Part shown: one piece after another, positions 19,701 through 25,700 of the stretch
Layout of the letters: each line of letters opens with the position of its first letter
How positions within the stretch are numbered: the first letter of the stretch is position 1
Assembly: GCA_950097015.1 (NCBI GenBank)
Contig: CATNEN010000008.1
Coordinates: 1,798,001 to 1,862,000 of the forward strand
Direction of reading: 5' to 3'
Source: Macrostomum hystrix
Lineage: Eukaryota; Animalia; Platyhelminthes
Length of the DNA stretch: 64,000 bases
Made by a program: the position numbers and the translations under genes
Notes under the pieces: model-generated
Databases searched by the model: none
The model's input: the letters and a program-made list of their open reading frames with translations, nothing else
Told to the model about the DNA's origin: nothing

Positions 19701-22700
19701 GCGGAAATGTCAAAGAATGACGCCGCGAAACAAAACAACATGTGCGCCAGACACACGCAGCCGGCAAGACGGCTAACCGTGTTACAGTATTCTGCATTAA
19801 TTTCAACCCTGCCCTTGCTTCTCAGCAGACTCGTAAATTGATTATTAAACTTGAAATTTGTGGCCTTGGGCAGCGGAGAGACGAGACCAGCGTGTGTGTT
19901 TGTGCCTTTGGGAAGCAAGAACACTAGCTTTGAGGGCATAGAACAGTTTCATGATCCCTAACTGAAGTTGTCAATTGTCAAACAACGATTCCGATTGTCA
20001 AAATCTCAGCATTTAGACGTCGGCGGGAGTTCACAGGTAACTGCTTCATTTCACCCGGAAAATTCATTTTTAGTGGCGTTTTTAATAGCCCTACAGTCCA
20101 TGGACTGAACAGCCATGTACGCGCAATGTACATCTGGCCCAGCCCAACAGAAAATTATCTCGTTACCGATTTCAACCAAATAAGAAGCGGCCCTGTACAG
20201 TGATTATCTGTGGATACTGAAAGCAGGTCTTCAATAGTAGAAGAAAAAATTTAAAAAAGGCAATCATTTTAATGCTCTCCGGCGACCCATTGTCTTTCAG
20301 CACCAATCCATCTTTCTCCCGCTATTGTTATCATTTTTCTTGGCTTATTTTAATCGCGCAGCAAATCCTACACGTACAGTTAGCTTGAATGCAAGTGTTA
20401 GTCTGGGAGTGCCAATTTCACAATGGACTCGCGAGAGCGGAACATAAGAGTAGCTGGGGCTGAGACTGAGCTAAACAGAAATGGGAAATCTGCATCTCGT
20501 CATCTCTGAGAGGATTTCCTCTTCTTCTAGCAGCAGCAGCGGCGGCGGCGGCGGCGGCGGCTGTCTTCGCATCTTTCGCTGCAGCCGGTGCAGTCACGGA
20601 ACAATAATATTAGGAAAAAGGCTAAAATCACAATTCACTTACTGTGATTTCTCGAATTCCCCTTAAGCTACCAGCAAGACAATAGGAGGGGATGGGGAGT
20701 GAGCAGAAGGCAGGGCAGACGACTCAAATAGATTGTCTTTTGCTGTTGAGGCAATTTTTCTCTCTCTCTCCATAGTAGAAGAGACAACGCGGAGCTACAG
20801 AAACACCAAGGCAAGGAGGGCTGGGATGGTGGGACAAAGATGAGGCAGATTTGAGAGGCTAAAAAGGCAATTGTCTGCTGCTGCTGCTGCTGCTGCAGAT
20901 TTGAGGCCAGGAAGTGCTTTTTGATCTGATTGAGAAATCAGCTCCCCCTCCGCCTAAGGAAAGGGGGAGTCGCAGAACAATGCTCAACAATTCTGCTTTT
21001 TTAGATACCTTTTTTCTCCCTCCTAGGAGCAGAAACTGGCTCGAAAAAATGCTGAAGACAATTATATTTTCTGTGCTTATAATACGATTCAGACTCACCG
21101 AAAATTGGAGAACCATTTCACCAGCTGGGCTGTGTTGTTCTTGTTGAACTTGACATCCGGGAAGTAGGCTTTGAGCACTGCTGAGCTCGGATAGCGGTTA
21201 TAAAAGAACAACAGCTTGGCTTTGCGCAGATGAATCGGTGTCAGTGTGGTTGTCTGCTGTCAAGAAGGCAGCTGCACGGTTAAGGAAATAACTGTCTTTG
21301 GAATGTCTGACTTGGGGCTTGCAAAAAGCTCTTCATTCTGACACCAGATGTTCGATGACAAACGTTGCTTTTTTAGTCCTTAACTGCAGTTAAACCATTC
21401 TGTTTATAGCTGGTCTTTGTATTGCACACCTGGTAAGATAACTTTCTCTTTAAGGTCTGGGTTGCCAGTATCCCTGTATTGCTATAGAGGAATTTCAAAG
21501 ATTACCAAAAATAGACTTTTGTCAACTTTCGCTTGTCTCACAAAGGTTTGCGGGCCATGATAGATAATTAGTAGCTTATAAAGTTTCCAGATACTTTAGA
21601 ATCAAATCGGGAATTCTTGGATCATTTTCTGTTTATTGGTGAACAGACAGACAACTTGACTTAACAAATACATAGGGATAAGAATTCAAAAGATAATATT
21701 CTGATTCTGATAATACGTGAGTGAGACAAAGCGAGAGACAGAAGGTGGGACAAGGGTGAGAAAGAGGATGAGATATAGAGGGAGAGAAATAGACAGTCTT
21801 GGGAGAGTGTGTGTAAAAGGGAAGCTGTTAGACAAGGATTTCGCTACAAAAGACCAACTTTAATTCCCCTTGATTTCTTCCTCTCTGCCCCGTCACGAAC
21901 CGGGCCCTGTCTGTCAGAGCAGATGGAGCTCCTTCATTGTTTTCTAGGCAATCTTTTCTTTTTTCTGGTTCCTTTTCCGGAGAATAGAATGAACACAGAA
22001 AATAAAAAAGGGTTGTGTATTTTTTAAACAGAAAGCAAATATGCGGGACAATAATTAGGACCCTCATGGCCTCTCTAAACCAAGCACCGTTAGATAGATA
22101 GATAGATAGATAGATAGATAGATAGATAGATAGATAGATAGATAGATAGATAGATAGATAGATAGATAGATAGATAGATAGATAGATAGATAGATAGATA
22201 GATAGATAGATAGATAGATAGATAGATAGATAGATAGATAGATAGATAGATAGATAGATAGATAGATAGATAGATAGATAGATAGATAGATAGATAGATA
22301 GATAGATAGATAGATAGATAGATAGATAGATAGATAGATAGATAGATAGATAGATAGATAGATAGATAGATAGATAGATAGATAGATAGATAGATAGATA
22401 GATAGATAGATAGATAGATAGATAGATAGATAGATAGATAGATAGATAGATAGATAGATAGATAGATAGATAGATAGATAGATAGATAGATAGATAGATA
22501 GATAGATAGATAGATAGATAGATATATAGATAGATAGATAGATAGATAGATAGATAGATAGATAGATAGATAGATAGATAGATAGATAGATAGATAGATA
22601 GATAGATAGATAGATAGATAGATAGATAGATAGATAGATAGATAGATAGATAGATAGATAGATAGATAGATAGATAGATAGATAGATAGATAGATATATA

Positions 22701-25700
22701 GATAGATAGATAGATAGATAGATAGATAGATAGATAGATAGATAGATAGATAGATTGATAGATAGATAGATAGATAGATATATAGATAGATAGATAGATA
22801 GATAGATAGATAGATAGATAGATAGATAGATAGATAGATAGAGAGATAGATAGATAGATAGATAGATAGATCGGATTTCTCCAAGGAGTGGAAATTGGGG
22901 CAAGTCGGTGGCAGGGAAGGATCAGGTTTGGCTCCCAGCAGCTGTTTTCTCCCCTTTTTGGGCCAAGCAGAGCGACTTACGCTTTGGCCCTCCTGGGTTA
23001 CCCGGGCCTCTAAATTTTTAGCGACTCCGCTAACTTCCCATCGCTTCCATGCCCAGAGAATCCTTTGGGAGTAGCGAGCAGATATCCTCTTCCCAAGCAT
23101 CCCCAACATCACCGCAGCCCCCAGCTCCCAAAAACCCAATCCCGCAGTTTCTTCGAGGAGAAAACGCCGTTGTGGAATTTTCTGGAGACCTGCCGCCGGA
23201 ATCAGATATTCATTGGGGGGAGAGAAAGCTGCTCTACGGAGTGGCCCCGCGCCCCATTAATTTTATATTCGTCAGCCGCCTCAGAGACACATTCTCCGGT
23301 CTCAATTCTAGGGGAATCTCACGGAGACGACTGAGGGAAAAGTTATTAAGGAGCGGCGAGCTAATTTCTGCCAGCAATACTCTCTGGCCTGGCCTGGAAG
23401 CAGATGGATAAAGTGGTTTGGGAGGCCAATACCTACTACATTTTGTCTAGTTTATCTCGTTTTTATTTCCAGAAAAGGATACTTGTGACGCCAGGTCGAA
23501 TTGGCCGGCTACGGTTGTCGCCGACGAAGTCAGCAACATGTCAGCGGCGGCTTCGATGCCGCTCGCGCTGACGGGTAGATCTCTGCCAAAGGAGGCTGGA
23601 GATGAAGCGCCACTGTTGTTGTTGTTATTGTTGTTGCCATGCGGAGATGAGGCCAGAGAATCTGCCTGCTGCTGCTGCTGCTGAGGATAAGACAATAGGT
23701 CCTGCTGTCCCTGACAGTAGATTGGAAAACCTTCTGGATCGTCGAGGCCAGACGATTGCTGCTGATGGCGGGATGTCTTCGGTGACAGGCGGGTGTCGGT
23801 CACCTGTAAGAATGGCCGGTAGAAATGGCAGAAGTACCAATTTGTATCCGTGCTTCCCCCCCGTTGCTTTCACTTCTTTTGTTAAGCGAAACTAAAGCTT
23901 GTGTTTTGGCACTTGACAAAAGAAAAGAAATTTTTCTGCCCTGTCTCCCGCAGCCACTCCAAGCGCGCTTTCACCAACAATGAGAACTCATAATCCGACC
24001 TGCACCTGCTCAGAAAGAGATGCAAAAAATTAAATAAAGCCTACAGAAAATATGAAAAGATGAAGATGAAGAATAGAGCCGGGGGCTGCCTTGGGGAAGA
24101 CGAAGGTGCCGTTAAGTGCCCAAAGAGCCACTCCGCGAGGCTCCAAGACATGCGGCACTTCATAAATTAGGCATGCCATTCCAGGTCCCTAATTAATAAA
24201 CAGCGGCGCGGAGTTCTCCAACTTTCTCTCCGTCTCCTAAAAAGCAAGTCGTCTTTTGCTTCGCATTCCGCGAAAGATAAAGTTCTATTTTCCTTTTGCA
24301 GTGAAAGAATTCTTTCTTCTCAATACTTTTTTCGTGCATTTATTAAAGAGTTTTTCTAGACTTTACATTAAAACAATGCTAACCCCAGTCTCACTACCCT
24401 CTCTCTCATCTCTCCCCTGTCTCATCTCTCCCCAGTCTCATCACTCCCCAGTCTCATCTCTCCCCAGTCTCATCACTCCCCAGTCTCATCTCTCCCCAGT
24501 CTCATCACTCCCCAGTCTCATCTCTCCCCAGTCTCATCTCTCCCCAGTCTCATCTCTCCACAGTCAATGCGGCTCGCTGTCATCTAGTTGCCGGCCCCTC
24601 ATAAACTAATGGAGCTCACCTTCGTCCGCTTCTTCTTCGGAGTGTTCACAACCAATGGCAGGGCTTCGCTCTGCTCGCCCGACTGATTGAAGCTGCTTAG
24701 CAGGTGGCTCATGGACGAATGCACTTGCTGCTGCTGCTGCTGTTGCTGCTGTGGTAGCGGCGCCTGCGGCGGCGGCGGCAGCGGCGGCGGCAGATCCTTC
24801 TTCTGGAAGAGGCCAGCAGCCGCAGCAGCGGCAGCAGCTGCCGAATAGAAAGACGCCGGGTGCGACATAGGGGGCTGCGTCGGTGGCGGCGGTGGCGGTG
24901 GCGGTGGCGGCGGATGCGACGGCGGCGGGCAGGCGAACTGCGGCGGCATGGCACCGCGCCAGTGCTCTTCTATGAGGCGGCGCCCGAACTCAGGCAGAGA
25001 GTAAAGCGGGTGCGGGTGCTGGTGCAGGTGCGGCGGTGGCTTCGGGAATCGAGCCGCGGCCGCCTCTTCAAACAATTGGGCCATGTGCGGCATTGGCAGG
25101 CCATAGAGTCCTAGTGATCTCTGCTGATGCTGCTGCTGCTGCTGCTGCTGCTGCTGCTGCTGCTGCTGCTGTTGAAGCTGCTGCATTTGTTGCTCCTGGA
25201 GTCTAGCGGCAGCCAAGCGCAGCTGGGATTTCATGCCTTCGCGAATTTTTCCCATCAGCGAGTCAACCATCCGGCTCACATCTTCGTTCACCTGCTTCTT
25301 CAGCGACTCGGACAGGCTGCGAATCTGCATCTCAGTCAAAAATGGCGCCAGGCCCGAATGTGGTGGCAACTGCGACGGTGGCGGCAGTGACTGTGGCGGC
25401 TGCTGCTGCTGCTGCTGCAACTGTTGCAAAACCCTGGACTGTATTTGCTGCTGCTGCTGCTGCTGCTGTTGCTGACCCAGCGGAGGCTGCTGCGACGAAG
25501 AAGATGGCGGTATCGGCGGAGGCGGCGGCGGTGGCGGCGGCGGAGGAGTCGGCCTGACAGCCTTCGTCGCCGATGTCTCCAAGTTGGAGGAGCCGGTATC
25601 GCTCAACAGCGAGTCACTCAGTAATGATGCCACCGCGGCAGCCGCCCTATCGCTGAGGCCGCTGCTAGCGCTGTTGTTGTTGCGATTGCTGCCGCTGACG

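Follow-up and report, generated by a model that had tools for sequence, protein, structure and literature searches.

A probable U12-type GT-AG intron at the edge of the homeo-prospero domain in prospero of Macrostomum hystrix

The prospero locus and use of the intron donor

The window analysed here is a 64,000 nt stretch of the genome of the flatworm Macrostomum hystrix (assembly GCA_950097015.1, contig CATNEN010000008.1, positions 1,798,001 to 1,862,000), the minus strand of which carries a prospero gene; all positions given below are those of the window. Between the second and third exons of this gene lies an intron of 2,226 nt (21257..23482, minus strand), or of 2,229 nt if the acceptor AG at 21254 is the one used. 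This is very probably a U12-type intron, spliced by the minor spliceosome, which has GT-AG termini and parts exon 2 from the exon that starts the homeo-prospero domain (HPD).

All five exons are on the minus strand. Exon 1 (24620..26593), defined by its open reading frame and donor sequence, starts with the ATG at 26593 and has 658 codons, ending in KKKRTK ahead of a GTGAGC donor. Exon 2 (23483..23803) was recognised from its translation, VTDTRL...GQFDLASQ; it comprises 107 codons, is in phase 0 at both ends, and its 3' extremity reads ...GCG TCA CAA at 23483 (end letters GCGTCACAA). Exon 3 (21101..21256) encodes the start of the HPD, running to ...WFSNFR and a phase-2 GTGAGT donor; read from the acceptor at 21257, it begins CAG ACA ACC ACA CTG ACA CCG ATT CAT CTG CGC AAA in phase 0. 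The remainder of the domain is encoded by exon 4 (17462..17606), which was delimited by its splice sites and corresponds to HPD profile positions 51-98 (Pfam E = 1.3e-20), and by the coding part of exon 5 with its stop codon (16721..16906), delimited by its splice site and corresponding to positions 99-153 (Pfam E = 7e-20). Residues 4-52 of exon 3 align with positions 1-49 of the Pfam HPD profile (E = 1.5e-25), the first profile position being found three codons after the intron, and the same exon matches the fly Prospero structures 1XPX and 1MIJ in the PDB (E around 1e-25) and that of human PROX1, 2LMD (E = 9e-19). These searches were made with single exons rather than with a joined spliced model. 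As exons 3 to 5 cover Pfam HPD positions 1-153, and exon 3 matches the structures of fly Prospero, the predicted protein identifies the host gene as prospero. At the remaining four splice junctions of prospero, the donor is GTGAGC, GTGAGT or GTGAGA, and the acceptor is rich in pyrimidines and ends in ...CAG.

Word searches with the upstream exons were uninformative: nothing scored with exon 1 (658-664 aa), as low-complexity words swamped the candidates, and exon 2, searched inside a 140 aa stop-free reference, had no match. The latter result implies that transcript-derived proteins of the species are absent from the collection searched, hence the junction between exons 2 and 3 is not visible there.

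Splicing at the donor was followed in contig sets from a single study, comprising four runs (X3-X6; organism code B) of around 47-50 million letters each, in which between a third and a half of the words sampled from the exon-rich stretch are present. Contigs were aligned on the donor side only, over positions 22905-26600, the acceptor lying outside this range, beyond a microsatellite in the intron. The X3, X4 and X5 contigs follow exon 1, pass over intron 1 and then follow exon 2 to exactly position 23483. At the joint between the first two exons, 816 nt are left out, bounded by GT..AG when read on the minus strand, and the contigs cover exon 2 over 23483-23799 in X4 and X5, and over 23483-23602 in X3. 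Past 23483 they continue for 780 (X3), 113 (X4) and 137 (X5) letters that are absent from the next 578 nt of the intron, with zero depth over 22905-23400 in the RNA-like contigs and a single junction on the donor side. The break point is unambiguous, as the first base of the intron is a G whilst either potential start of exon 3 has a different first base (C or A). The contigs behave in the manner of spliced transcripts, with the GTATCC donor in use; the placement of the donor at 23482, originally predicted from the letters of the genome, is borne out by contigs of three runs that leave the genome exactly at 23483.

At position 23759, inside exon 2, the X3, X4 and X5 contigs all have an A where the window has a C (plus strand). 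This mismatch is a fixed difference, or an allele, distinguishing the sequenced sample from the assembly.

Splice signals and the minor spliceosome

The intron opens with GTATCCTTTTCT at 23482, directly after the final CAA of exon 2, and its nucleotides +1 to +9 (GTATCCTTT, 23474..23482, minus strand) match the U12-type 5' splice site consensus RTATCCTTT at all nine positions. This consensus occurs once in the 64 kb window, at the prospero donor, where 1.55 occurrences would be expected by chance. The same donor is the sole RTATCCTT-type site in the window; the remaining matches to RTATCCTY are all ATATCCTC, nine of them being within a tandem repeat at around 29.8 kb. This repeat (29751-30465) is based on a 7 nt unit, AGAGGAG, with 103 copies and 73% matches, and ATATCCTC recurs in it on the minus strand with a 21 nt period. 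These ATATCCTC words are repeat units that resemble U12 donors.

Towards the 3' end of the intron is the U12 branch box TTTCCTTAAC (21279..21288, minus strand), an exact match to the consensus TTCCTTRAC, with the presumed branch A at 21280. Hence both of the U12 signals on which the original prediction was founded are exact consensus matches. The word TTCCTTAAC is found three times in the window, compared with 0.52 expected. The two further exact copies are at 16187-16195 (minus strand), around 530 nt past the stop codon of prospero, and at 10912-10920 (plus strand), with no U12-type donor in the window for either of them. These motif counts are not significant on their own. The significance of the signals instead derives from their placement, as the donor word is found exactly at the exon end used in the RNA, and the branch box lies less than 30 nt from the only in-frame acceptors. 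The terminal dinucleotides are matched rather than mixed, with GT at 23482-23481 and AG at both in-frame acceptors. An Rfam search of the whole window returned no match.

These two acceptors form a tandem AG-C-AG motif (CAG|CAG; 21254..21258, minus strand), in which the AG at 21258-21257 is 23 nt from the branch A and that at 21255-21254 is 26 nt from it. Both are preceded by C and both are in frame, with products that differ by one Gln; exon 3 would begin with CAGACAACC were AG 21257 used, and with ACAACCACA in the case of AG 21254. The first AG after the branch box (21272..21273, minus strand) is only 8 nt from the branch A, and its use would give an in-frame TGA (LPS*; downstream letters CTGCCTTC). 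On account of this frame, and of the short distance to the branch A, we infer that it is not used. Separating it from the acceptors is a pyrimidine-rich spacer of 13 nt (CTGCCTTCTTGAC, 21259..21271, minus strand), within which another word, TTCTTGAC, bears a weaker likeness to a branch box; at 3-6 nt from the acceptors, it is too close to serve AG 21257 or AG 21254.

The machinery that would recognise these signals was sought in the window's own assembly (220 Mb, 42 contigs), using Rfam gathering scores as cut-offs. Single full-length matches above these scores were found for three minor small nuclear RNAs (snRNAs), namely U12 (85.7 bits), U11 (70.4 bits) and U6atac (47.5 bits). All have canonical recognition sequences: U11 starts with AAAAAGGG, U12 contains GAGUAAGGAAAAU and U6atac contains GAAAGGAGAGAAG. 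Pairing of the prospero donor with the 5' end of this U11 is calculated at -13.1 kcal/mol, and that of the branch box with the GAGUAAGGAAAAU region of this U12 at -13.9 kcal/mol.

There was no match to U4atac at the default Rfam threshold, and a pattern of complementarity to U6atac returned one chance match, which was rejected by Rfam. A laxer Rfam search gave one full-length candidate (G000:C34:7129766-7129911, minus strand; locus L016, 1501-1646), which scores 35.6 bits against a cut-off of 53 and has a K-turn-like loop and a AAUUUUUG Sm site. The first 20 nt of this candidate pair with the CUCCCCUGCGCAAGGACGG region of U6atac (locus L002) at -31.8 kcal/mol, whereas 500 shuffles of its 5' end (the first 25 nt) had a mean of -12.3 kcal/mol (standard deviation 2.9) and a best value of -22.7 kcal/mol. 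The locus is likely, on this complementarity, to be a U4atac gene. Of the minor spliceosome proteins, the zf-U11-48K domain (a CHHC zinc finger) matched in three places; this domain is non-specific, being found in TRM13 and GTSF1 as well. The genome thus encodes U11, U12 and U6atac, along with a candidate U4atac, and the suggestion that this lineage has kept a minor spliceosome is supported by three snRNAs above the Rfam cut-offs and a diverged candidate for the fourth. In schistosomes, U4atac and U6atac are strongly diverged yet present (Copeland 2009, PMC2770079), with which the sub-threshold score of the candidate is consistent. It may be a useful addition to the family seed for this lineage.

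Orthologous introns and intronic repeats

When exon 3 was used in a word search, 100 short proteins were recovered, the majority being open frames that extend across the exon on genomic contigs. The codon preceding the boundary, seven residues upstream of the His, was of the xAC type in 46 of the 72 fragments that were long enough, and around 20 fragments had S/P/T-L-T six codons before the boundary, corresponding to TCC TTA ACN, a U12 branch box in frame. At the DNA level, seven loci have such a branch box 10-15 nt before a boundary that lies seven codons upstream of the His of HLRKAK, six with introns ending in AC and one with an intron ending in AG. The distance from the branch A to the boundary is 10 nt in L009 and L026, 11 nt in L023 and L024, 12 nt in L004 and 15 nt in L011, from the leech Helobdella robusta, all of which have AC 3' ends; it is 13 nt in L018, the locus with an AG end. 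A donor closing an open frame was found 632 nt upstream in L004 (ATATCCTTT) and 540 nt upstream in L018 (CAA|GTATCCTTTT).

Three other loci (L012, L017 and L025) were left out of the distance comparison, their acceptor type being unsettled. In L012 (around 7975-8055), an AC-ended intron is present at the conserved boundary, but the only branch-like box, ACCTTAAC, is 41 nt upstream and followed by a long T tract; this may be a further case of a U12 branch site lying far from the acceptor, or else a different kind of AT-AC intron. Two further loci have pyrimidine-tract acceptors at the same boundary: L010 (around 1150-1320), from the monogenean flatworm Protopolystoma xenopodis, and L019 (around 590-672). 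No U12 branch box was found at the conserved boundary in either, with none within 70 nt in the case of L010. From their sequences, both look like U12-to-U2 conversions of an intron that has been described as universally kept. The Protopolystoma intron (CAAALY010244725) resembles that of M. hystrix in its boundary, seven codons before the His; however, it differs in having a pyrimidine tract and TAG acceptor, with a GTGAGT around 135 nt upstream, such that it looks U2-type, and the upstream exon is a candidate only.

Intron 2 of prospero in Drosophila melanogaster is a U12 twintron with AT-AC termini, and the orthologous intron in humans, intron 4 of PROX1, belongs to the U12 type (Lin 2010, PMC2831892, Table 2); mammalian orthologues are stated to share the fly termini (PMC2831892). 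This is one of two U12 introns conserved in all the insects and vertebrates examined (Janice 2012, PMC3291851). The M. hystrix intron is in the same gene as the fly intron, is likewise of the U12 type and lies, by way of the orthologue series, at the matching place on the N-terminal border of the homeo-prospero domain. However, the fly intron is AT-AC, and a U2-type intron nested within it adds 29 residues (PMC3291851, PMC8329584), whereas that of M. hystrix is GT-AG and has in-frame stops. The vertebrate PROX1 intron, which has no twintron, is listed as the orthologue of the fly U12 intron and hence should be orthologous to that of M. hystrix too; it differs in being AT-AC, by the statement on shared termini (PMC2831892), rather than GT-AG. 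The closest parallel is L018, on a metagenome contig (ENA ERZ4903317), which shares the boundary, phase, GT-AG subtype and U12 branch box, as well as a near-identical donor context. It differs in its branch A being 13 nt from the AG and in its intron of 540 nt, as opposed to 23-26 nt and 2,226 nt in M. hystrix, where the intron also contains a 780 nt microsatellite.

The series of loci supports the intron being an orthologue of the ancient prospero/PROX1 minor intron, the link to fly and vertebrates being provided by the published comparisons (PMC2831892, PMC3291851). The antiquity proposed for it in the original prediction accords with a position and phase as in the U12-type prospero introns of seven other animals, and with the conservation of the pros/PROX1 intron in the literature. 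Likewise, the proposed switch to GT-AG is supported by the AT-AC termini of six of the seven orthologues and of fly pros, with those of mammalian PROX1 following from the statement on shared termini; as these are AT-AC, the GT-AG subtype appears to be derived in this lineage. The same subtype is present in at least one other taxon (L018). GT-AG introns are the usual intermediate in U12-to-U2 conversion, and conversions occur mainly from GT-AG U12 introns (PMC2831892).

The microsatellite in the M. hystrix intron is a (TAGA)n array detected by Tandem Repeats Finder (22091..22871, no strand assigned), with 195 copies and 98% matches, and makes up around 35% of the intron. A satellite is present in every prospero intron looked at. 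Intron 1 contains around ten copies of a 16 nt tandem repeat, TCTCATCTCTCCCCAG (24383-24565). Its word depths in the X3-X5 RNA-like contigs sum to around 50,000-60,000, and the repeat can be seen in X1 too. Depths of this order mean that the unit must be present in very large numbers in those data sets, whether it is a dispersed repeat or a sequence with high expression. Elsewhere in the prospero introns, a 175 nt unit built of 16 nt subunits is repeated 4.1 times at 18622-19348, and 34 nt and 32 nt units adjoin exon 4 at 16995-17454.

Mode of splicing and significance

Taken with the donor seen in use, the signals and the snRNAs suggest a mechanism in which U11 would pair with GTATCCTTTT at the donor and U12 with TTTCCTTAAC, leaving the A at 21280 bulged. 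The U4atac/U6atac.U5 particle would then join and U6atac would replace U11 at the donor, with cuts at 23482 and at one AG of the CAGCAG acceptor (21257 or 21254), an AG past some minimum spacing being taken as the 3' site. The history of the intron in this lineage would include a change of both termini, AT-AC giving way to GT-AG, and a shift of the branch box from 10-15 nt to 23-26 nt away from the 3' splice site. The original suggestion that inclusion of the homeodomain may hinge on a slow, regulated step echoes what is claimed of minor introns in general.

Several points weigh against this reading. The distance from the branch A to the acceptor, at 23-26 nt, exceeds the 10-15 nt of the seven orthologues and is around twice the published optimum of 11-13 nt for U12 introns (PMC3584512), although a short branch distance is preferred rather than strictly required. 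A distinct polypyrimidine tract is not expected of U12-type introns; here, pyrimidines predominate in the final 15 nt of the intron, as in a U2-type acceptor. The acceptor that is cut, the nucleotide that forms the branch and the reliance on the minor spliceosome are inferred, and the data sets X3-X6 are contigs of unrecorded library type, the RNA nature of which is deduced from their skipping of the intron. A quick Pfam search found no match to PDCD7 (U11-59K), in a search in which no control matched, so that absence is not shown.

Some of these features would suit an intron that is removed by the major (U2) spliceosome, alone or in addition to the minor one, with the U12 motifs persisting as relics on the way to conversion: the GT-AG termini, the pyrimidine-rich run and the long distance from the branch box to the AG could all be accounted for in this manner. 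The U2-like acceptors at this position in Protopolystoma and L019 indicate that conversion has occurred in other lineages, and conversions are mainly from GT-AG U12 introns (Lin 2010, PMC2831892). However, all four minor snRNAs are present, with U4atac as a candidate, and a perfect 10-mer branch box would not be expected to persist without selection. Moreover, U1 needs A/G, G and T at +4 to +6, where the prospero donor has T, C and C, offering no complementarity to U1 whilst matching the U11/U6atac site at nine of nine positions. Given this donor and the perfect branch box, a U2-type or dual mode of splicing is very unlikely. A twintron of the Drosophila type, in which a U2-type intron nested within the U12 intron gives a longer isoform, is more improbable still. 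Such an arrangement is present in the same intron of insects (PMC3291851, PMC8329584), and many insect-like exon 3 fragments stay in frame upstream of the boundary (GYSLSE...). In M. hystrix, however, the reading frame from exon 2 meets a TAG twelve codons into the intron, after eleven codons and with no GT before it, and an in-frame TGA is found directly upstream of the acceptor; these stops at the two ends make a nested in-frame U2 donor impossible, and exclude the fly type of twintron. The RNA-like contigs also have only the one junction, and in the literature the twintron is limited to insects (PMC3291851).

A U12-type intron spliced by the minor spliceosome hence remains the best explanation, within which the choice of acceptor is a closer question. 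The AG at 21257, as originally predicted, is a real in-frame acceptor giving phase 0 at both ends of the intron; however, it is one of two in-frame choices, and not the one that is exactly orthologous. From AG 21254, the exon starts TTTLTPI, seven codons before the His, which is the exact orthologous boundary, whilst AG 21257 is one codon upstream. In each of the seven U12-type orthologues, as well as in the U2-like L010 and L019, 21 nt separate the boundary from the His codon downstream of it, and this corresponds to 21254 in the window. With both AGs preceded by C and keeping the frame, it is quite conceivable that the same U12 intron uses AG 21254, or that both AGs of CAGCAG are used, giving isoforms one Gln apart. 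Against this, no AG that is far enough from the branch box to be workable comes before AG 21257, and the choice of 3' splice site usually favours the nearer site; use of AG 21254, alone or together with AG 21257, is rated somewhat below an even chance.

The feature is of an already known kind: a further lineage's copy of the conserved prospero minor intron, of a derived GT-AG subtype and with an unusually distant branch box. It indicates that the prospero/PROX1 minor intron survives in this lineage as well. Outside insects and vertebrates the intron is not frozen: most of the animals sampled have AT-AC termini, M. hystrix and one other taxon have GT-AG, and the version in a parasitic flatworm is apparently U2-type; these are the states proposed as stages of U12-to-U2 conversion. 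The survival of the intron, its changeable subtype and the lack of the fly twintron are all expected from current knowledge. The displaced branch site, if it were general in the genome, is the only point likely to interest splicing specialists. We tentatively raise the possibility, which we consider rather less probable than its converse, that the minor spliceosome of this genome routinely works with a branch site placed 23-37 nt ahead of the 3' splice site, around twice the canonical 11-13 nt, with prospero as one case measured against orthologues. If so, this would represent a lineage-wide change in the choice of the U12 3' splice site.

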